Notes: generated by a model from the letters alone, not told the origin. A stretch of DNA of 64,000 nt from Pecten maximus (GCF_902652985.1 NC_047024.1:39370001-39434000); one strand, 5' to 3'. Positions 48,601 to 64,000 are shown, numbered from the stretch's first letter. Translations and numbers: made by a program.

Positions 48601-51600
48601 TCCTTTACACCTGAAACAATGTATTTATTGGACAAAGTATGCATTGTAGTGTGTGGATTTTCCATTAAAATAGCCCTAAAGGAGATGAAAAAGCAAGAAA
48701 ACAGATCAGATGTTTTAATGTTTTCAACACTGTTGATTGCCTATTCCATTGCTTCACTGTTTTTTTTTTCTGCCATATTGCACATACTACTGAACAGGCA
48801 TACAAGAGATGCATTTTGTCATTTCGATTGGTTGAGAAAATCACATAGTCTTTGGTAAAGCAATTTGAAGTCACCTGAACATGACCTTACTGGCCGCTGT
48901 CAGATCTCCATAGAATATAGTGTATAATGATATGTATCTTAATCAGATTGATTTCCTACACAATATAGGTCACTGGCACTCGATATTTTGGGCATTGATC
49001 AACCTAGGTGATAGATATGTTATGAATCAAAAGTAAGCCACTCTGACCTACATTTCTTTTCCTTTCTAGCCATATACTTTCACATTCTGTAGGAGACTGC
49101 GGTTCACCAAATTATCTTGTTGATACTTTAATGAACCCTGAAGATGACCATCGATTTAGGTGAGATTTGCATTTTGCTGAGGAGTTAAAATACATCAAAC
49201 TTTTACTCTTGCAGGGCGACAAGTTGGCAACAGATCAGGTGTCACGGGTCGGTCTTATTGAGGTGGAGTGCTACAAGGCTGTAAAGAAGGCAACATTTGT
49301 GACGAGGAGAAAGAGAGATCTCCTCTTTGACCAGGCCAACAAGAACGACTGTTTTGTTGTCACACAAGGTATGGGATCTGTAATAGTTGATGGGTAGGCC
49401 ATTGTCACAGTAATAGTTGATGGGTAGGCCATTGTCACAGTAATAGTTGATGGGTAGGCCGTTGTCACAGTAATAGTTGATGGGTAGGCTGTTGTCACAG
49501 CAATAGTTGATGGATAGGCCGTTGTCAGAGTAATAGTTGATGGGTAAGGCCTTTGTCACAGTAATAGTTGATGGTTAGGCCTTTGTCACAGTAATAGTTG
49601 ATGGTTAGGCCGTTGTCACAGTAATAGTTGATGGGTAGGCCGTTGCCACAGTAATAGTTGACGGGTAGGCCGTTGTTACAGTAATAGTTGATGGGTAGGC
49701 CGTTGTCACAGCAATAGTTGATGGGTAGGCCATTGTCACAGCAATAGTTGATGGGTAGGCCGTTGCCACAGTAATAGTTGATGGTTAGGCCGTTGTCACA
49801 GTAATAGTTGATGGGTAGGCCGTTGTCACAGTAATAGTTGATGGGTAGGCCGTTGTCACAGCAATAGTTGATGGGTAGGCCGTTGTCACAGCAATAGTTG
49901 ATGGGTAGGCCGTTGTCACAGCAATAGTTGATGTGTAGGCCATTGTCATAGTAATAGGTGATGGGTAGGCTGTTGTCACAGTAATAATTGATGGGTAGGC
50001 TGTTGTCACAGTAATAGTTGATGGGTAGGCCATTGTCATAGTTATAGGTGATGGGTAGGCTGTTGTCACAGTAATAGTTGATGGGTAGGCTGTTGTCACA
50101 GTAATAGTTGTTGGGTAGGCTGTTGTCACAGTAATAGTTGTTGGGTAGGCTGTTGTCACAGTAATAGTTGATGGGTAGGCTGTTGTCATAGTAATAGTTG
50201 ATGGGTAGGCTGTTGTCATAGTAATAGTTGATGGGTAGGCTGTTGTCACAGTAATAGTTGTTGGGTAGGCCGTTGTCACAGTAATAGTTGATGGGTAGGC
50301 TGTTGTCACAGTAATAGTTGGTGGGTAGGCTGTTGTCACAGTAATAGTTGATGGGTAGGCTGTTGTCACAGTAATAGTTGATGGGTAAGCTGTTGTCACA
50401 GTAATAGTTAATGGTTATGCTGTTGTCACAGTAATAGTTGATGGGTAAGCTGTTGTCACAGTAATAGTTGATGGTTATGCTGTTGTCACAGTAATAGTTG
50501 ATGGTTAGGCTGTTGTCACAGTAATAGTTGGTCTTGTCACAGCAATAGTTGATGGGTAAGCTGTTGTCACAGTAATAGTTGGTCTTGTCACAGCAATAGT
50601 TGATGGGTAAGCTGTTGTCACAGTAATAGTTGATGGGTAGGCCGTTGTCATAGTAATAGTTGATGGGTAGGCCGTTGTCACAGTAATAGTTAATGGGAAG
50701 GCTGTTGTCACAGTAATAGTTGATGGGTAGGCTGTTGTCACAGTAATAGTTGATGGGTAGGCCATTGTCACAGCAATAGTTGATGGGTAGGCCGTTGTCA
50801 CAGCAATAGTTGATGGGTAGGCCGTTGTCACAGTAATAGTTGTTGGGTAGGCTGTTGTCACAGTAATAGTTGATGGATAGGCTGTTGTCACAGTAATAGT
50901 TGGTGGGTAGGCCGTTGTCACAGTAATAGTTGATGGGTAGGCTGTTGTCACAGTAATAGTTAATGGGAAGGCCGTTGTCACAGTAATAGTTGATGGGTAG
51001 GCTGTTGTCACAGTAATAGTTGATGGGTAGGCCGTTGCCACAGTAATAGTTGATGGGTAGGCTGTTGTCACAGTAATAGTTGATGGGTAGGCTGTTGTCA
51101 CAGCAATAGTTGTTGGGTAGGCCATTGTTACAGTAATAGTTGATTGGTAGGCCGTTGTCACACTGATGAAACTTTATTGTGCTGGTGGGTGCAAATTAAT
51201 GTAAAATAAATCTATGGGTGTAAGTGATGTAAATACTAGCCGCAATATACCGCTTAGCTAAACAGAAGACCTCTTGAGCTCAATCAATTGAGTGTAAGAC
51301 TGGTAAGCCAGAGGTCCCAGGTTCAATCCCTAGCTGAGTCAGTGTTTTAAATTTAATAAATCATGCACTCTGTTACAAAAAGAATATGTTGCTGTTTTTA
51401 TGACATTGATGATTTCATCATTTCACTTTTAATGTTTTTTTTTTGTGTTAAGATTAGTAACTGCTGCAACTTAAACCAAACTTGGTATCTATAGCAAGTC
51501 TTCAAGGACTCAGAGTTGTACATTTTTGCATGCTGTACTTTTTTTTGTATATTGAGTTGCATTTTTGAAAGTTTTCAATATTAATTCCTTATTCTGTATT

Positions 51601-52106: not shown

Positions 52107-54416
52107 CTGTAGTACTGCATTGACTCTGTAATCATTTATATTTACACCACAAACTGATTATCTATTGCATGTTATGGTATGGCATTGTCCATCCATCCAT
52201 CCGTCCGTCTGCCCAACTTAAACTTCTATTTGTCCCACATTCCCCTTCTACATTTTCGACCATTCTCTTTGAAACTTGGTATACATTACATGTATTTTCA
52301 TGAATTGAAGTTTTTTTCTTTGACAAGAATTTTGTTTCAACAATTTTTGCAAAGGTTAACAAGCTTTATTTCAGTAAATGACTTTTTGTCTGGAGATTTA
52401 CATTTTTTTTTTTTTTTTTTACAGATTTCTTTGATAATTGCTATACAGTATAATTACTACATGAAATTGTGTTTGCCTGGAAGAATTTTGATTCAATTAT
52501 TTTTGTAAAAATAGTATTGCCATTGTTTATTTCAGTATGATATTTTGTCCAGAGATTTCCTCCTAAATTTTCAACTTTGAATGCATTATCTATGATCATG
52601 ATATAAAGTTTCTGTTTACACGAAAACATTTTGATTCAACTATTTTTGCAGAAGTTATTGCCCTTTGTTTATTTCTAATACTTGCACCTTGTCCAGAGAT
52701 ACCCTTTTACAGTTTTCTATCAATTTCTTTGAAACTTGGTAGACCCTTTAGTCATGATATTAAGTTGTGTTTAATGAGTTGGAGATTTTGATTACTAGTT
52801 TTCCTCAAATTGTTAGAAAATTGAACATTGTCTTTGTAGTGAAAGGTGAGATTTATAACATGCCACCTAGCAACTTTTAGGGTAATGCAAATATTATTAT
52901 AATGCAAGACACTATACAACACTACATGACATTAGACATGTGTACATTGCTCTGCCCTGCTGTACTGTTCTTCAGCATCTCATTTGACGTAAATCACATC
53001 CATCTGACTCTCATTTACATACATGTACTTCATATTCCAGAAAGTGTTTTAGTCTAGTCATAATGAAGTCTTTTTCTTGGGGATATTAAACAATCAAAGT
53101 GTAAACAGTTTATTAAGATTTCCAAAAAACAATGGCAACTGATTCGAATAGCTTGGTTGCAATGATAATGGAATGAAAACCTCTTGATTGGTCAGAATTT
53201 AGATGATGTATGATTTCGCCAAAAATTGGTACATAAGGGTTTTGAGGGATGCTAATCATAGTGGCAATAGTTTTTTTTTTTAGAAGTGGTTGTCATAGTA
53301 ATGAAATGGAAGCCTTCCGATTGGTTGAAAATGCTAATATTATCAGATTTTGATGAAATTTGGTATGAAGTCGTTTCCTTATACTTCAAATAGAACTGGG
53401 ACATCTATTTCTGGATTTAAAAGAATACTGCTATTTGGCTATCTTTTGATTGGTGGAAATTAAGATGTTAAATTTCGACGAAAGGTAGTTTTTTTGGAGG
53501 TTTATTATCAACTGCAGGGGTATTTTTTGGGAACTTAGGTAGACATTGTTACTATTTTCACTTGTTACTATTTATTTGTGTGTGTTTATTTTTGCACTTT
53601 CATTTCTACACATCAGAAAAATGATTTAGTTATTATGTGCGTCAAGATTGTTGGTATGTGTATATAGGAACGTGTGTAAGTTGGTACAGTGTATGTGTTA
53701 TAAGAATTAGGCAGACCTATTTTGTACATTCTAAGTTATTGCTTGAAAAACTAAGAAAATTATTATTATATATTGTTTAATATCCATCGCTGAACCAGAA
53801 GATATTAATATTGACAATCAAAGAATAATTTGTTTGAGAAGTACACAATTGAGTTAATTCTTCATAATAAAGGTATTTGACGACAAGCTGGTATATTTTC
53901 CTTGTTCATTTCACTGAAAAAACTTGTCCACCTCATAAATAATCATGAATCATGTCTTGAGTAAATCGTAACAGTTGTCTTTCAGTTGACTTTATTGTCA
54001 ATAATCACAAACCTGTCGTATAGAAATCTGATTATTTTAATGCCAATATTACAATTTGTTTATTGCACATCATTGATATGATATCATGCTCATGAAATCT
54101 CACACATTTCATTTAATGTAATTATACAAAATAAAAACTGTCCCCATGAAGTATGTAAGGAGGTAAATGTACATGTACAGATGTCATGTTAATCAAGAGT
54201 TTTAGTGACTAAGTCCTTCATAGTATTTGGTCGATGTCAAATTTTAATAAGATAAACAGATAAACCTGATAACCCATCAAATGATGCATATTTTCTCAGC
54301 TTGCTTTACAAATATTCTTGAACTACAAACCATCAGTGATATAAATCACTATCACAGAAAACAAACTTTTAAGTGTCCACCTTCCCCAATAAAAAGAAGA
54401 GATATACGTATATTAA

Positions 54417-57400
54417 TTACTGTCCATTAATTTTGGCTGGATCACCAAGTGTGGCATCCCAGATTTTCATTTTGTCTCCGCCAACAGAGTTCTTTGTTTT
54501 AGCCCATTTGTCAGCAGATTTGTCTCCATGGGGAACACCAAACATGGCATCACCAAGGTCGGAGCTTAACTCAGCCAATATCTTAGGGTCTTTGTAGTGT
54601 GTCACAGCTTGTGCCATAGCAACTGCCCGCTTTGCGGGATTTGAACTTTTGAAAATTCCAGAGCCTACGAACACACCATCCACCCCAAGCTGCATCAAAA
54701 GGGAAACATCAGCTGGAGTAGCTGCAATAGAAAACACGTTTAACAGTAAGGTATTGGTTGATAGCATATGCAAAATTAAAGATTGAATTCAATCAAATAT
54801 AATATGTTTCAAGACTTGAAAAATTTTATTTCAAATAACTTCAACAATATTAGAAAATGGGGAACATAATATCACATAATGATTATAAGAATATTAGAAA
54901 ATTGAGAAACATTTACATATATAAAGTCACAAGTACTGTATTGATTTTCATAATATCACAGGTTTAATTTCAGATCAAAGATCATGCACTTAACTATGAC
55001 CGGTTAAAATGATGGAACCAGTTACCTTATCCGGCAATGTTACCTAATCATTAGTAGATGGTAAGATTCACCGTGTCTAGTTTTACGGGACTAAAGGAGG
55101 CTTTATTTACCTAGGCCCCCTGCGGCAAAGTTGACTACAGGAAGTCTTCCCAGCTCCGCGGTCTTTTTGAGCAGATCGTGTGGCACCCGGAGCTCCTTAG
55201 CGTAGTTATATAATTCAGTCGAGTCCATGGCACTGGCTAACTTGATCTGCTTATTGATTGTTCTGGCATGTTTAACAGCTTCAGAAACATCCCCTTTAGT
55301 GAGTAAAAGGTCAATTCAATGACTGATGCATCAAAAAAGAATTAGAGTGACTAGGTATGATTAAGCCATGAAGAATTTCTTGGTATGAAAAAGTAAAGTT
55401 AGAGCTTTGAAAATATAAATGAAATGAACATAGCCTTTATTCAATATCATTTAAAAGTTCATCATAGGTCAGGGAAATTTAAATTTGTATAAAGCTAGAG
55501 ATTATAGAAGTTCTAGAATGATATGAATATATGCACTATGAAAATTCAGTTCTACACACATGATAATGTTGACTTGATAATTTCTATACATAAGAGATTG
55601 TGACTTGAAACATGTCCTATTTTACTTGTCAGTGTAGTAACAGGTTCATACCAGTGCCTGCTTCTCCCTTTGTCCTGATCATGGCAGCACCCTCGGAAAT
55701 TCTCCGTAATGCTTCACCGAGGTCACGTGCTCCACAAACAAACGGAACCTCAAAATTGTGTTTGTTGATGTGATTCACCTCATCTGCTGGCGTTAAAACT
55801 ACAACAAAATAATCATAGAATTTACATTACACAAATACAGGTACAAAATTAGTATTATTTTACCTATCAGCTAGTCTTGTCTGGTTTACACATAAAGGTT
55901 GAAGTGTGCTTCTGTGACTAACCTAACCTTGTCAAGTTCTCAATCATGATGAAACCCACATGTATGTTCTAATACAAAATCCAGGCTGTTATACAATTCT
56001 ACACGACTGACATCCAGACTTCATCCCCTTCTTTTCCCTTTAAGAGGAGCCGATGTGCCCAATCTATACCCATATTTTGGTATGAATATGAATAAAATTT
56101 CTTTATTCTGAGTTCAAAAATCCAATTACCAATTAGTGTAACTTCAAGAACAGCTTGTAGCTTTACAACATTGTGCTGTATTGAGGTAAAAATTTGTCTT
56201 CTTTTCTGAGGCTTGAAATTGTTCTTGTGTATGGTGGTTTTCATCTCCAGGGGCCTGAAAGTACACCTTTCCAGTCCCTGGGGCCAGACCCTGAGTAGGG
56301 GAAATATTTCTTCAAAAGCCTTCTCAATTCTGTATGAGCAAAAGGTTTTTTGTCCATGTTTTTCGTCTGAAGCATCTTGGAGTGAAAGGGAACCAAATTT
56401 TATAAATAGTGGGCCTGGCCCCACAAGGGCTGGAGGGGGAGCACAGAATAGGAGAAATACAGCAAATGTTTGAAGTCTGTTTTGCTTTAATCACTGCAAT
56501 ATCAATGTGAGTGATACAGGCCCACTTGGCCTCTTGTCCATCACCAACACTTGTCCTTATGAATGATAGAAATGCCTTAGTAAGGCAATCATTTTCTAGC
56601 ACTGATGGTCTACTTTATGAAAGAACTGCTTTGATTAGGTAAGCATTTTATAACACTGATGTTTTAACTTCTGCTAAAACTGCCTTAGTAAGGCAAACAC
56701 TATCATAACCCTGATGCTCTACTTTCTAATAGAGCTGCCTTAATTAATATGGCAAACATTTCTTTAACATGGATCCTCTACCTTCTGATTCATCCACCAT
56801 GTCCACTCCAAGAGCTTGCAGAATCTGGGCCTCTGCGAAATGACCAATCCTTGATTTAGCCATCACTGGGATAGTCACTGCAGCAATAATTCCCTTAATT
56901 TTCATTGGATCAGTCATTCTGGCCACGCCTCCCTCTCTTCTAATATCAGCAGGGACACGCTCCAATGCCATGACTGCACATGCCTAAAAACAGTATTATA
57001 GAACTATTAAAATATTGTCATTATGTACATGTAAATAATTTCAAGATGTTCAAATTTTTTTTTTAGTGATACACATGTTCAGATTTTGGTTATACTAACC
57101 CCAGCCTCTTCAGCAATTCGAGCTTCCTCTGGAGTTGTCACGTCCATTATTATGCCACCTTTGGCCATCTGAGCTAGGCCAGCCTTTACCTTGAATGTCC
57201 CTGCAAACGAGAAATTTATTACATACCGTGGAGTCTTACTTTAGTAATATAGACAACTCTAGGACATGTTTTATAAGGTCTTGTATTTTCCCTGTAGTGT
57301 GAATTATTTTTGATCTACATCATTTGTTTGTATCATCTGGGTAAATTGAAACAATGGATTCCAAATATTTCAGTCATTTCACATTATGGTAACATAACAT

Positions 57401-57889
57401 TATTATGATGCAACAACTTTTTATCAGACTTCATTATGACATTTATAGCTGAAATGAATAACTACATGATGTGAACACACTGATCTGCAGTTATAACTCC
57501 TAGCCTGTGATAACCCATGACGTCATGTAACTTACTGGCTTACCCCTACATGACTTATATTGCCAACTATAGTCATGTTCTGTCGGCTGAACTTAGTTAC
57601 TGGTTTAAATTTACTACCTACATGACTTCGCCCCTTGCTAGGTTTTATCTCACCAACTACGTTAGAGTCATTGTTCTGTAGACTTTAGTAAGTTACTGGT
57701 TTACCGCCTACATGACTCCACCTATTGCTAGGTTTGGCATTGTTGTCTATAGTTGTGTTCTGTTGGCCTTAGTTAATTACTGGTTTACTGTCTATATCAC
57801 GCCTATTGCTAAGATTCGACTCATTGTTTTGTCAGAGTCCAGCTTTTACAACAGTACTTACCAGTCTGTGTAGAGACAGCGTCCTTCAT
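54417..57889 (-). CDS. PDX1: Pyridoxal 5'-phosphate synthase subunit PDX1/SNZ/PdxS, 6 coding exons, about 321 aa
   Basis: Exons 57889-57862, 57200-57100, 56983-56782, 55798-55652, 55293-55111, 54721-54417 (966 nt, GT-AG, phases consistent). Motifs: [45 protein letters not shown] (catalytic Lys), [42 protein letters not shown] (second Lys), [29 protein letters not shown]. The symbol refers to the vitamin B6 enzyme, not the homeobox gene. Confidence 0.97.
56571..56786. repeat. Diverged ~55-bp tandem repeat ending at a PDX1 donor
   Basis: gccttagtaaggcaa...gatg(g/c)tctacttt units; the last unit is gatcctctac|cttct, the real donor. Confidence 0.6.
57525..57861. repeat. Diverged ~85-bp tandem repeat abutting a PDX1 donor
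   Basis: ttactggttta...cctacatgact...ttgctagg...tgttctgt units at about 57531, 57597, 57693 and 57777. Confidence 0.6.
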
Positions 57890-57987
57890 TGTGAGATTAG
57901 TGACATCACAGGTCACACCTGTTACAAAAATTAAAAACAATTGATGAAAAGGTCAAAACAATTTATACCGACATCACAAGAGACATT

Positions 57988-59430
57988 GGATGTGATGCGA
58001 CTAAATTGGTTTGTGATGTGACTGCATTGGTTGTGATGTGATTACATTGCTGGTTATGCAACTTCGTTGGTTATGATGTTGGTTGTCATTTGACTTCATT
58101 AGTTGTGACATGACTACACTGGTTTTGATGTGACATGTGGGTTGTGATGTGACTAAAATGGTTGTGATATGAGCATTGGTTGTGATGTGACATGCGAGTT
58201 GTGATGTGACTACATTGGTCGTTAAGTGACAATGTTGGTTATGACATGTTTAAACTGGTTGTGATGTGACTAAACTGGTTATGATGCGACTAAACTGGCT
58301 GTGATAACTATTATGGTTGTGCCATTACTAAACTGGATGTGATATGAGCATTAGTTGTGATGTGACTGAACTGTTTGTGATGTGACTACACTGGTTACAA
58401 TGTGACTACATTGGTTGTGATGTGACTAAACTGGTTGTGATGTGACTACACTGGTTCTGATGTGACTAACTGGTTGTGATATAACTAAACTGGTTGTGGT
58501 GTGATTAACTGGTTTTGATGTGACTTACTGGTTTTGATGTGACTAACTAGTTGTGAATCTGTGATGTGACTAAACTGGTTGTGATGTGACTAAACTGGCT
58601 GTGATGTGAATGCTCTGATGTGACTATTATGCTTGTCACATGACTACACTTTTTTATGTGAACATTGGTTATGATGTGACTCAACTGGTTGTGGTGTGAC
58701 TAAATCTGTTGTGATACGACTACTTTGGATGTGATGTGACTACACTGGCTGTGATGTGAGCATTGGTTGTGATGTGACTAAACTGGTTGTGATGTGAGCA
58801 TTGGTTCTGATGTGATAAAACTTGTTCAGATAACTGGTTATGATGTGACTAAGCTGGTTGTGGTGTGACTAAATTTGTTGTGATATGACTACATTGTGCA
58901 TGATGTGACTACTTTGGTTGTAATGCGACTACACTGGCTGTGATGTGACTAAATTGGCTGTGATGTGACTATATTGGTTATGATGTGACTTAATTCGTCG
59001 TGATGTGACTACATTGGTTGAGATGACTCACATGGTTATAATGTGACTTAACTGGTTATGAAGTGACTAAATTTGTTGTTGTATGACTACATTGTATGTG
59101 ATGTGATTGGTTGTGATTTGACTAACTTTGAATGTGATGGGACTAAATTGGCTGTGATGTGACTAAGCTGGTTGTGGTGTGACTACATTGGTTGTTATAT
59201 GACTACATTGTATGTGATGTGATCGGTTGTGATTTGACGAACTTTGAATGTGATGGGACTAAATTGGCTGTGATGTGACCACATTGGTTGAAATGACTTA
59301 CATGGTTATGATGTGACTAAGCTGGTTTTGGTGTGACTACAATGGTTGTGATGTGACTACAATGGTTAAGATGACTCACATGGTTATAATGTCACCAGGT
59401 TATGTGACAACACGGTTACGATGTGACTCC
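57988..59430. repeat. Degenerate 20-bp minisatellite in the PDX1 5' intron
   Basis: Unit ggttgtgatgtgactaaact, about 70 diverged copies. Confidence 0.9.
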
Positions 59431-60106
59431 ATCGCTTGTGAATTGACAACACTGATTGCAGTACTAGTGTGACAAAATAGTTTGTGTGACTACGTACATA
59501 TACGTGCGTTGATTGTGATGAACACGGCTGGGACGCCCTATGATGTCCTTCATTAAAATCAATATCTTCCTGTTTTTAACCGATTTTATAATTCATGAAA
59601 AGTCATTTTTATTTATGTATTTCGTAATATCGCTTACTAAACCTACGCCATATATCCATGCTCTTTTGACTTACCGTCGCCTGTATATATTTTGCTATTT
59701 CTTTTATAAGGAGACGAATTAATATAAGCTTTAGGCTTGTTTTCGAATCCTTACATTCATGTAATGTGTACAACTTTGCTGTTTACAAAATAAAATACTG
59801 TTTAAACCAAACCTACGCCAGTCCTGGCTGTTGTAAAGCATGCGTAAACAATCTTGTATCTTATTACATGCGACATGGCCTGACGTTGTTTTAGACCTCC
59901 AGTATATCGATATAAAAGAGTGACAAAATGGCTGTTATTTAACATCAACACTTGTATAAGTATGGATACACGTGGTCCGTGTCGTAAAGCTGTACGCGTA
60001 CACTACTCACCATTTACAAGCTTTCCTGTCTCGGCCATTGCTCTGTTTGTCTCCGGTATATTACAGATGTGTTTTACTGGCGGACTTGTCGTCGATAGTC
60101 ACTCAC

Positions 60107-60438
60107 CGGAACTGTATAACGTGTGTAGAGCACTTCACGGTCGAGGTCTTTAAGTAAGGAATTCGATCTACGCTACCTTTTAAATAGTCCGTATAAAACC
60201 TAGAACTGCCTATATTAGCCTACTTTCAACCAGATAAAATAATTCTGACGCAATTCCACATTTATGATGATCTGACCTGCATCTGCCAAGTTCAACTCCG
60301 CCAATGGTAGGACCCTTTTATACCAAGGACAACTGATCGCGTTTGTTTGTGTACCGAACAGTTTCGTAACACGTGTTTTGTAAGACAACATATACAAGTT
60401 ACATAAAGTTTGTGTTTGGCGTAGGACTCTGTCGACAG
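60107..60438. promoter_or_regulatory. Putative bidirectional promoter and first non-coding exons of PDX1 (-) and PDX2 (+)
   Basis: CpG-richer segment bounded by a minus-strand donor CCG|gtgagt (60106-60101) and a plus-strand donor CAG|gtaaga (60439). Both ATG-bearing exons begin with acceptors (exon starts 57918 and 62093), so upstream exons are required. Confidence 0.55.
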
Positions 60439-61553
60439 GTAAGAGATTTAAACTATTATAACCATTTCTGTCGGGAATTTACAGCTGTACAATGCACTCA
60501 TTGGCAGTACATATCGAGGAAAATTTTAAATCTGGTTTTAATTACCAGATCTATACAAGTGCCTGTGAATGCACTGTATGAAACACATTTTGAGTTATAA
60601 CTTATAAGTCGAGACTTGTCAGTTTCATGATAAGAATTATAATTTTGTATGACATTGATATAATATGACAGTGATATTTTCACTGAGAGTGTATGATATG
60701 CTTCTTGTGGCTTATGAAACCATGACTTATATTAGCTAAGCCTAAAACAAAGTGATGAAACCTAGTCTACAAGTGGACTAGGCGGGCCCATATCAGTTAG
60801 AATTTTAGATTGTGACTAAAGAGTTTCAAAAGGGAGATAATTGAACTAAGCCATTCAGCCAAGGAACAGATCAAATTCGAACCAAATATTTTAATTCCTA
60901 CGGAAATTGTCTAAACTACAGAATCCAGAAACATAATTCGTGACTAGATACATTGACTTAGGTGTTGATATATATAGACAGAGACATATATATGTCTCTG
61001 ATATAGATAACTTAAGTCCGTGCTTATATTAACGATCTTGAAACACAACATATGGCTGTGACCTTGAACATCTTGGTTAATGATCAATAGCTACAACAAT
61101 GTACATATATTTCACAAATGGGTGATTATTTTCATATTTTCCACAAGTGAAAAAGAGAAAACGATTCAGGAGTAAAATAACGGGACAATAATGAATTCGC
61201 CAAACAAAGGCCCAGTAGGCCTGTACCACTCGCGTGTTCATAAAAAAATAATTTTGGTGTTGGATACGGAACCCAAATTGACATAGCTCAAAACTATCAT
61301 TCTACACTCCTCGGTAATGGTTTATTTCGAAATGTAAATTTCTGGAACTTATTCTCCGTTCCTATCGCAAAATCAAAACAATTTGATATTCTATATATTC
61401 TCTAGTTTATAAAATTCTATCGAATTGACGATAACACATGAATAATTTATATCATCATATTCAAACAAAACAGACAATGCCAAGGCTAATGGCTTTTTTT
61501 TAGGGAATATTGCAATATAGACTATAGGTATATAACCACGAGGAAAATGTATA

Positions 61554-61712
61554 ACGTGTCTTATGTAACATAAATTATGTCGTATGTAACATAATCAATT
61601 ATGTCTTATGTAACATAATCAATTTTGTCTAATGTAACATAATCAATTGTGTCGTATGTAACATAATCAATTGTGTCGTATGTAACATAATCAATTGTGT
61701 CTAATGTAACAA
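61554..61712. repeat. About 24-bp tandem repeat
   Basis: atgtaacataatcaattgtgtcgt x6-7. Confidence 0.85.
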
Positions 61713-62100
61713 TGATTTAATCTTGTTTGTAACTAGCATTTTAATCGGCTTATAAAATGTTATCAGTCCATAACGTAAAAAAAATGACGTTGCCGTTTAT
61801 AACGTCGCTTTTTATTGGTGGATGGATCAGCGTAATGATTTGTAAGAGAAAATAGTCCATAAATGAAAATGAATTTTTGCAGGGCATAGATTAAATTATA
61901 AAGATTAACTTGAATATACATGTATTTTTATGTTATGGAGTTATAACACAAAAAATCGAAGTGTAAATAGAGTACACTCCGGATTTATTTCACCTCCATA
62001 AAATAAGAAATAAGTTAATCCTTTATTATGAATTATGTCCTTTGTGACATGAGTATGGAGTATGCTATTATGATATTAATACTCTTTTCTAGGATCAAAG

Positions 62101-62463
62101 ATGCCGCCCTCTGGACTTAACGGAAACCAAAAACGACACAGAAAAATCGGCATTCTGGAGGTTCAGGGTGCATTTCAAGAACACAAGGTGGCTCTGATGA
62201 GGGCCAAAACATGTATGCATGTGAAAACAGAACTTGAAGTGGTGGAGGTTCGCCATCCAGACCACCTAGTGCCCGACATGGACGGTCTGATTATACCGGG
62301 AGGCGAGAGTACCACTATTAGTCTATTCCTGAAAAGAAACAATATGGAAGAGCCTCTCCGGAACTGGATACAGACAAAAGGTCACGTGGTGTGGGGAACC
62401 TGCGCAGGGATGATCCTTTTATCAAGGTTTACCGAAAACCAAAAAGACGGCGGACAACCAACG
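62101..62463 (+). CDS. PDX2: PLP synthase glutaminase subunit PDX2/SNO/PdxT, first coding exon (121 aa); gene continues beyond the window
   Basis: KIGILEVQGAFQEH, DGLIIPGGESTT and the nucleophile motif WGTCAGMILL. Acceptor at 62091-62092 and donor ACG|gtaagt at 62463. Confidence 0.93.
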
Positions 62464-62864
62464 GTAAGTCGTATCCGGCACATATCCAGTTCTCAGGATA
62501 TTCATACGGATTATTTGTATTGATAAGCGTATGTTACACCTGACGTTTTCATTACAAAATGAATATCGATTGTATATAATATCAAATTATTTAAGTGTAA
62601 CATATGGTGCCAAAACACAGGGGCCTGAGGATTGAGACACGGAGTGTATGTCGAGACCCGACGTGATGTTTTGGGAGTTATAGGCAGTTGTCGTGTAGTT
62701 ACAAAATTACACTGTAAACACTATCCCAGTGGTAATTGTCTTATTCATGTACTTTGTACTTTACTTTTTACAATAGGAGATGTCCCGACATACTTACTGT
62801 GACTTGATTCACAGAACCCTGTTAAAAATGGAAATATCATGCGACATTTCAACAGCTTGTGACA

Positions 62865-62964
62865 TATGGCGCGGGAAGGATGTCATAATTAAATATTTCT
62901 GCCTGGGCAAAATCGAATATTGCTTAGGCAAAAATATTTAATTATGACTCCTTCCCGCGCCATA
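62865..62964. mobile_element. 100-bp hairpin element with TATGG...CCATA ends
   Basis: tatggcgcgggaagga(t)gtcataattaaatatt ... aatatttaattatgactccttcccgcgccata; no TSD seen. Confidence 0.65.
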
Positions 62965-63301
62965 GATCTAGAATCTTTTGTTCTACCCTGTCACATAAAC
63001 CTGATCGGGACTATTTCAGTTATTAAACATGATACTTGTACGACAACGTGCACACTCAATTTCAATCAACCACAGTACAAAATGAAATAAACAAGACGAT
63101 TTGTTTAGGTGTTTAGTTCTAATAGAAAAGGTTTCACAGGGACTGCATGTGTACGCGATATACTCATCATGTAGGCATGGAGCGCATAATGAGTATATGC
63201 TCATATGAAACCAACTCAAACACTTACTGATTGATAGTTCATATTACGTGTATTGCGAATTTTATTGTTATTTGGTTTTTCTAAAAACTTCGCGTTTAAT
63301 T

Positions 63302-63580
63302 TCAGTCAGTTATAACTTTCTGACGAAACGTTTCGCGCGAGGCAAGTGTGTACAAAGAACTAAAAGTATCTTGCGACTCCAGAAAACGGATTATCTCGTG
63401 TAGATAATCACTCGCCGTACCACCACTGATTACGGAATGTTCCTCCTCTGTCTCTATTTTCTCCTCGTCTTCACTGTCCGAAACATTCAGAGCGTCTTTT
63501 ACAACATCTGCATTAGTCATCTCCGTAGTATTACTGAGGAAATCGGTCGCGGTGACCTTGACCCCGGGAGCGTCGTTTTA
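63302..63580 (-). mobile_element. pogo/Tigger transposase C-terminal remnant in a PDX2 intron
   Basis: Peptide MTNADVV..SDSEDEE..ASDYLHEIIRFLE..RQKVITD has the acidic tract, helix and terminal QxxITD pattern typical of Tigger-type transposase C-termini (recognised from memory). Confidence 0.5.
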
Positions 63581-64000
63581 CTGCTATTGCGAAACATACA
63601 AACATCGATAAAACAACTCACTTTAATCAGAAGTCATCGAAAACACAACTCAACAATTCAATAGCCGTACACATATATACTAGAAATGTACCATCGAGCG
63701 CCTCTCGGTGACACGGTCGTGATCACCAGGGCATGACTTACCTACTTCGGAAGATGGGTTCGTACTATAGTGTTAAAATAACACGGAATTTCAGCCGACG
63801 GGACCGCTAAATTGGATCGTTATAGACAATATTTCGCTGCGTGAAATTCGCACTATAATTATAGAATTACATAGAAGTAAAATCGCTATTTATAAGCGTG
63901 TTCGTACTAAACGTGTTTTACTGTATGTTAACATGTCGAAAGCTAGGGGTTGCGTTCTTGATCAGGTACATTGTATTTCGTCAGAGATTATATGTGAGCG

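Follow-up and report, generated by a model that had tools for sequence, protein, structure and literature searches.

A divergent PDX1/PDX2 gene pair of the vitamin B6 synthase in the scallop Pecten maximus: transcript anatomy and linkage across animals

A 64,000-nucleotide stretch of the Pecten maximus genome (hereafter the window; G000:C10:39370001-39434000, within a 918-Mb assembly of 3,983 contigs) carries two genes arranged head-to-head, PDX1 on the minus strand and PDX2 on the plus strand. We consider it likely, with a probability of about 0.8, that this locus is the P. maximus copy of the divergent PDX1/PDX2 pair (also known as SNZ/SNO or PdxS/PdxT), whose products are the two subunits of the glutamine-dependent pyridoxal 5'-phosphate (PLP, vitamin B6) synthase. 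Searches were made with single exons, the full-length queries being database proteins, and the region studied contains no stretches of N. For transcript evidence, RNA-derived Logan contigs from four runs of four studies (X1, X3, X5 and X7) were placed on positions 57050-62500. All positions are counted from the first letter of the window.

On the minus strand, open reading frame (ORF) pieces between 54417 and 57200 match the Pfam family SOR_SNZ (PF01680) over profile positions 2-207, with exon-wise scores of 40-113 bits against a cut-off of 27, which assigns the gene to the PdxS/PDX1/SNZ family. Coding exon 3 (57099-57200) is recognized from its translation and from RNA contig pieces in four runs. 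Coding exon 4 (56782-56982), whose upper end is fixed by an RNA loose end, matches PF01680 with E=1.7e-30 and solved PdxS/PDX1 structures with E=2e-26, and carries AKSRIGH. Coding exons 5 and 6 have approximate bounds: the former (55650-55797; PF01680 positions 101-151) contains RTKGEAGTG, and the latter (55106-55290; positions 149-207) was placed by reading its frame. The last coding exon is bounded by its ORF at 54417-54773, with the true acceptor inside, near 54735, and the stop codon at 54417-54419; the C-terminal tail that it encodes is 88% identical in another scallop, Ylistrum balloti. The exon translations contain AKSRIGH, RTKGEAGTG and GGIIMDV, so that the motifs AK.RIGH, RTKGE.GTG and GG.IMDV are intact. 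According to the structural literature, the first two of these hold the catalytic lysines and the third is a further PDX1 motif.

On the plus strand, the first coding exon of PDX2 is its exon 2 (62093-62463; ATG at 62101, 121 codons), of which 62101-62463 matches the family SNO (PF01174) with E=6e-22. This exon matches P0001 ('pyridoxal 5'-phosphate synthase subunit PdxT-like [Pecten maximus]', 237 amino acids) at 100% identity and aligns to solved PdxT chains, the alignment with 2iss_D spanning GTCAG. An RNA loose end at 62463 continues into L005:1603 onward, and PDX2 intron 2 (62464-64000 as far as it lies here) accordingly leaves the window; the last coding exon lies beyond the window end, at L005:1603-1953 (about window positions 65507-65857), and covers PF01174 positions 66-187. 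The two PDX2 coding exons score 78.9 and 80.8 bits, above the PF01174 cut-off. Both characteristic motifs are intact, GTCAG in 62093-62463 and FHPE in the last coding exon; GTCAG and HPE are the Cys-His-Glu triad motifs of PdxT/PDX2/SNO, with a catalytic role according to the structural literature.

PDX1 and PDX2 are each single-copy in a profile search of the 918-Mb assembly (PF01680 and PF01174, respectively), and both are intact, intron-bearing and present in spliced RNA. They are adjacent, and the sole RNA-supported exons between them are their own first exons; an Rfam scan of 54000-64000 gave no family match, leaving no other gene or known RNA between the two. The divergent orientation that a sequence-only reading of this DNA had proposed is borne out by the profile matches together with the RNA joints. 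So is its description of the locus as a two-gene metabolic cluster in an animal: the PLP-synthase pair has both of its first exons within one short, CpG-undepleted segment.

Three splice joints are common to all four RNA runs: 57201-57861, 57919-60010 (CT..AC, i.e., GT..AG on the minus strand) and 60439-62092 (GT..AG). The first removes PDX1 intron 2 (661 nt) and the second PDX1 intron 1 (2,092 nt), leaving between them a 57-nt exon 2 (57862-57918) with an ATG at 57889; this exon is defined by the RNA joints and its translation, and is 88% identical to Ylistrum L014:4852-4918. The third joint removes a 1,654-nt intron in the 5' untranslated region (UTR) of PDX2. The donor of PDX1 intron 1, GTGAGT, starts at 60010, and 57918 is joined to 60011 in every run. 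The sequence-only reading had bracketed a core of ~330 bp between opposite-strand donors at 60106 and 60439; the donor at 60439 holds, being used in four runs, while that at 60106 is used in none. The donors in use, at 60010 and 60439, enclose not ~330 but 428 bp (60011-60438), a segment that contains the first exon and presumably the core promoter of each gene. The minimum extent of PDX1 exon 1 is 60011-60181, from an X1 contig at 60008-60181, and that of the non-coding PDX2 exon 1 is 60206-60438, from an X1 contig at 60206-60436 joined to 62091-62463. As both first exons end within a 428-bp segment fully covered by RNA contigs, the two transcription start sites (TSSs) would be separated by fewer than 428 bp, barring upstream exons that escaped detection.

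In X3, X5 and X7 one unbroken contig spans 60008-60436 and links the PDX1 exons to those of PDX2. The separate contigs of X1 break at 60181 and 60206, where the other runs have variants, namely a +T indel (behind 60177, in a T run ending at 60181) and an A>G single-nucleotide polymorphism (SNP) at 60205; we read these breaks as heterozygosity bubbles rather than transcript ends. Depth in the intron bins was zero in X3 and X7, so the continuity of these contigs is not DNA carry-over. A strand-blind k-mer assembler can carry a contig across this segment only where each word is present in RNA, so that at least some transcripts of the two genes would overlap by ~30 nt (assuming k=31). We infer that the first exons abut or overlap, with a 5' overlap of at least some transcripts. 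Contig depth was considered as a proxy for co-expression and rejected, there being one depth figure per contig. Within the PDX1 introns, 57684-57735 and 59652-59811 are covered by high-depth RNA contigs whose ends run into unrelated sequence, and we interpret these segments as dispersed repeats of which other copies are expressed, rather than as PDX1 exons. The core is polymorphic among the sampled scallops at 60147, 60177, 60205, 60254, 60334 and 60341 (a 2-bp deletion, a +T insertion and four SNPs relative to the reference); such natural variants would allow the expression of PDX1 and PDX2 to be tested allele by allele.

Comparison with Ylistrum bears on where PDX1 translation begins. Translation from an ATG at 60038, within exon 1, gives MAETGKLVN plus one base and continues in frame across the intron into exon 2, and the annotated Ylistrum PDX1 (338 amino acids) starts at the homologous place with MTEKLLN plus one base, followed by gtgagt. 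Within exon 2, the sole change between the two species upstream of the internal ATG is synonymous. Moreover, a short first PDX1 coding exon ending in ..NG before gt is also found in Lottia (..NNNG|gt) and Owenia (..VTNG|gt), and no ATG occurs on the minus strand over the 220 nt that precede 60038 (P ~0.014 by shuffling). PDX1 translation thus likely starts at 60038 (codon 60038-60036), in which case the ATG at 57889 encodes an internal Met, the likely start codons of the two genes are 2,063 bp apart, and the 2.1-kb, satellite-bearing intron 1 is probably a phase 1 intron within the coding region rather than a 5' UTR intron. The two ATGs from which a spacing of 4.2 kb had been reckoned, 57889 (minus) and 62101 (plus), do exist and are 4,212 bp apart, but the former is probably not the PDX1 start. 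By the same token, the gap between the genes, which had been described as mostly 5' UTR introns and satellite, does contain a satellite (57983-59367) and a PDX2 5' UTR intron (60439-62092), while the PDX1 intron has probably to be moved from the 5' UTR to the coding region.

The shared core has a G+C content of 42%, and its observed/expected CpG ratio is 1.13 as against 0.51 for the window; the claim that it is CpG-richer than its surroundings is therefore upheld, and its undepleted CpG suggests an unmethylated, promoter-like state. Its middle 255 bp (60113-60367) occur once in the genome and are not a repeat. The candidate elements of the core, all of them putative, are (i) TCACCGGAAC at 60103-60112 (plus), with an ETS-like CCGGAA core; (ii) two facing TATAAAA boxes, found by motif scan at 60192-60198 (plus) and 60316-60322 (minus), where ~0.29 TATAAAA would be expected by chance per 428 bp; (iii) a CCAAT box at 60301-60305 (plus); and (iv) an E-box, CACGTG, at 60370-60375. 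When the whole inter-ATG region was compared with Ylistrum by blastn, the exons alone aligned. A short-word search combined with MAFFT alignment found only the two donors, TCACCGGAAC (Ylistrum L014:7696-7705) and the E-box (L014:7773-7778) to be recognizably conserved and collinear; in Ylistrum the corresponding stretch between the PDX1 ATG and the putative PDX2 donor spans only ~172 bp.

We propose that transcription of both genes would start within 60011-60438, as from one compact bidirectional promoter region. Were the TATA boxes used in the canonical sense, the TSSs would lie near 60225 (plus) and 60290 (minus), giving a 5' overlap of ~65 nt, and this predicted overlap fits the continuous contigs. 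PDX1 and PDX2 products form one obligate complex, and promoters and first exons interleaved in this way would couple the expression of its two subunits. An interleaved pair would also be difficult for rearrangements to break up, and this would account for its persistence from a time before animals and fungi diverged.

The reach of this arrangement among animals was surveyed by finding PDX2 proteins in a word search and then inspecting their contigs with 10-kb flanks, for nine animal genomes counting Pecten. Head-to-head adjacency of PDX1 and PDX2 was found in eight of the nine (seven of eight besides Pecten), which belong to four phyla. PDX1 lies upstream of PDX2 on the opposite strand, with gaps between coding-sequence (CDS) starts of 0.21 kb in the sponge Ephydatia muelleri, 0.59 kb in the copepod Tigriopus californicus, 0.78 kb in the annelid Owenia fusiformis, 2.0 kb in the gastropod Lottia gigantea, 2.4 kb in the scallop Y. 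balloti and 4.2 kb in the bivalve Mytilus edulis; in the gastropod Haliotis asinina the same arrangement was seen by tblastn only, with no gene called, at ~9.9 kb to a PDX1 exon. In a maximum-likelihood tree of 39 PDX2 proteins, the 20 animal sequences stand apart from those of fungi, plants and bacteria with support of 100/99, and the Suberites domuncula SNO protein (P0067) falls within the animal clade. Further, the PDX2 intron that follows the first 121 codons has the same position in sponges, the copepod and molluscs. Whether the linkage had been kept or had re-evolved was left open by the sequence-only reading; the survey makes it look retained rather than recent. Its suggestion of very old microsynteny is likewise sustained, the adjacency being present in molluscs, an annelid, a copepod and a sponge, as well as in published fungi, Dictyostelium and Ciona (PMC2871058). 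In Tigriopus, a gene encoding a 906-amino-acid coiled-coil protein (CFAP58/CCDC39-like; L012:5312-8032) has been called within the stretch that the PDX1 gene model occupies, in the same orientation, and is either nested in a PDX1 intron or an annotation artefact.

Several observations weigh against the proposal of a shared, anciently conserved promoter unit. The RNA evidence consists of contigs, which show neither transcript starts, strand nor level, and minor upstream starts could account for their continuity. If the TATA boxes were instead used outwards, the TSSs would not overlap but lie near 60165 and 60350, ~185 bp apart; this arrangement gives 5' UTRs without upstream ATGs, while minor upstream starts would be needed to explain the contigs. 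A motif search across seven species found no promoter motif common beyond scallops, so that the regulatory logic is not conserved in sequence outside the scallop family. Finally, the sponge Amphimedon queenslandica has no PDX1 within 10 kb of PDX2, and the pair can thus be separated. The tree and the shared intron position nevertheless fit a linked pair that was inherited vertically within animals, with the linkage lost in Amphimedon.

The divergent SNZ/SNO pair itself is prior art, which reduces the novelty implied by the sequence-only reading. Among 64 eukaryotes, SNZ/SNO was ranked as the fifth most conserved divergent pair, being divergent in 12 species: Candida, Chaetomium, Ciona intestinalis, Dictyostelium, Fusarium (two species), Gibberella, Lodderomyces, Magnaporthe, Neurospora, Pichia and Saccharomyces cerevisiae (three pairs) (Dávila López et al. 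2010, PLoS One, PMC2871058). That study concerns the same pair as the one described here, but molluscs, annelids, arthropods and sponges are absent from its species, and it does not describe the anatomy of the transcripts. The yeast genes are known as head-to-head pairs bound by common regulators (PMC3303733). The S. cerevisiae pairs SNZ1/SNO1, SNZ2/SNO2 and SNZ3/SNO3 resemble the Pecten locus in joining the same two families head-to-head across a short shared upstream region; however, they have no introns and a true intergenic spacer of a few hundred bp, whereas in Pecten an intron directly follows each first exon, the first exons abut or overlap and the ATGs are 2.1 kb apart. In bacteria, pdxS and pdxT share one orientation and one mRNA, in an operon that couples the same two subunits genetically for joint expression, as in Pecten, although the Pecten genes are divergent and produce separate mRNAs. 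Closer to the present case are the animal SNZ and SNO genes of the sponge Suberites domuncula, whose 'gene structure and promoter activity' were reportedly treated by Seack et al. in 2001, and which are said to share a bidirectional promoter; in the related sponge Ephydatia the pair is 0.2 kb apart. Mammalian CpG-island bidirectional promoters (TSSs <1 kb apart; ETS/GABP, NF-Y and E-box sites) offer a further parallel, in that the Pecten core has a short distance between first exons, undepleted CpG and one each of CCGGAA, CCAAT and CACGTG, the roles of these motifs being putative; unlike that class, its G+C content is only 42% and it has two TATAAAA boxes, which are atypical there. For animals, a review holds that vitamin B6 cannot be made and acknowledges the pathway 'in some sponges' (PMC7954711), and our literature search on PDX1/PDX2 in molluscs, annelids, copepods or other metazoans found nothing on the pair. 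What is added here is the RNA-supported anatomy of an animal pair, a corrected PDX1 start codon and an extension of the adjacency to four animal phyla.

Of the ways in which the locus might be explained otherwise, a bacterial contaminant or a recent bacterial transfer has a negligible chance of being correct. It would accord with textbook statements that animals cannot make vitamin B6 (e.g., PMC7954711), but both genes have spliceosomal introns with GT..AG joints in RNA, a chromosome-scale contig of 44.8 Mb carries the locus at 39.4 Mb, orthologues occur across Mollusca and other phyla, and animal PDX2 forms one clade; splicing evidence and genomic context together exclude this explanation. 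It is also very improbable that the locus has exactly the form first proposed from its sequence, with a ~330-bp core between donors at 60106 and 60439, both introns in 5' UTRs and starts 4.2 kb apart. Positions 60101-60106 do read as a minus-strand GTGAGT donor, and the one at 60439 is correct; yet four of four runs splice at 60010 and none at 60106, which refutes the model for the runs examined, the motif at 60103-60112 is conserved in Ylistrum, which has no donor there, and the ATG at 60038 is in frame and conserved.

Two further alternatives concern the history and meaning of the adjacency. The two promoters might be independent and merely close, with the adjacency maintained by inertia or physical overlap and conferring no shared regulation or benefit of co-expression. 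This we think unlikely, despite the lack of motif conservation beyond Pectinidae, a CDS-start spacing that ranges from 0.2 kb to >9 kb, the fact that Amphimedon split the genes and kept PDX2, and the separate X1 contigs for the two genes (depth 335 versus 47.5, figures that cannot rank genes). Against it stand the divergent adjacency in eight of nine animals from four phyla and in fungi and Dictyostelium, the fully RNA-covered 428 bp that contain the Pecten first exons, and the established biochemistry of a single obligate complex. Alternatively, the linkage might not be ancestral, having arisen by repeated convergence or by independent transfers of the gene pair into eukaryotic lineages. The genes are, as is generally known, unlinked in plants and Plasmodium, as they are in Amphimedon, and bacterial Caldilineaceae PdxT proteins score against sponge SNO about equally to plant and fungal proteins. 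Such an origin is nonetheless quite unlikely in our view, given the single animal PDX2 clade (100/99), the PDX2 intron position common to sponges, copepod and molluscs, and the short first PDX1 coding exon common to molluscs and the annelid; in addition, bacterial pdxS and pdxT are established to be co-directional, not divergent.

PDX1 intron 1 contains a minisatellite (57983-59367) of ~71 copies of a 20-bp unit with the core TGGTTGTGATGTGACTA, found by Tandem Repeats Finder (TRF). A dimer of this unit, allowing up to two mismatches, was found only at PDX1 intron 1 in the 918-Mb genome. The orthologous Ylistrum intron holds an array with the same TGGTTGTGATGTGACTA core, of ~110 copies (L014:4946-7155), in an intron that does not otherwise align, and the putative role of the minisatellite may be that of a homotypic binding-site array. 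PDX1 exon 2 holds an inverted near-copy of the unit (57896-57915). Combining these features, a more far-reaching account can be sketched, which we offer as possible but doubtful: a single ancestral PDX1-PDX2 unit would predate the split of animals, fungi and Amoebozoa and would have been held together for >1 billion years by interpenetrating transcription units, the Pecten 5' ends overlapping between facing TATA boxes, while the scallop-acquired, locus-private and sequence-conserved TGGTTGTGATGTGACTA minisatellite would serve as a homotypic regulatory array.

Other repeats lie in and around the PDX2 introns. The 5' UTR intron contains a 24-bp tandem repeat of 6.6 copies (61556-61711, by TRF), and the equivalent Ylistrum intron an unrelated 37-bp tandem repeat of 7.4 copies (L014:8923-9192). 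Past the window end, an array of ~40-bp units (TTGTTCAGGAGTTTTGGTCGTCACACTCCC) at L005:480-1340 (about window positions 64384-65244) fills much of PDX2 intron 2. The same intron contains, on the minus strand at 63302-63520, an acidic ORF of 72 amino acids with a sub-threshold match to Pfam NUCB1_N (E=0.0016), which may be a transposon remnant. Elsewhere in the window, long minus-strand ORFs at 49785-51161 encode a perfect 10-residue repeat, (TTAYPSTITV)n, from a 30-bp tandem array.

The phenomenon described here has been reported before, and the gain is one of breadth and anatomy, not of kind. Against the textbook view, the Pecten locus and its orthologues indicate that PLP synthase is still intact and expressed in many marine invertebrates. 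With its compact element of 428 bp and few candidate sites, the Pecten locus is itself open to dissection. PDX1/PDX2 is one of very few functionally linked pairs that are adjacent across animals, fungi and Amoebozoa, which makes it well suited to asking why rearrangement has failed to separate certain divergent pairs.

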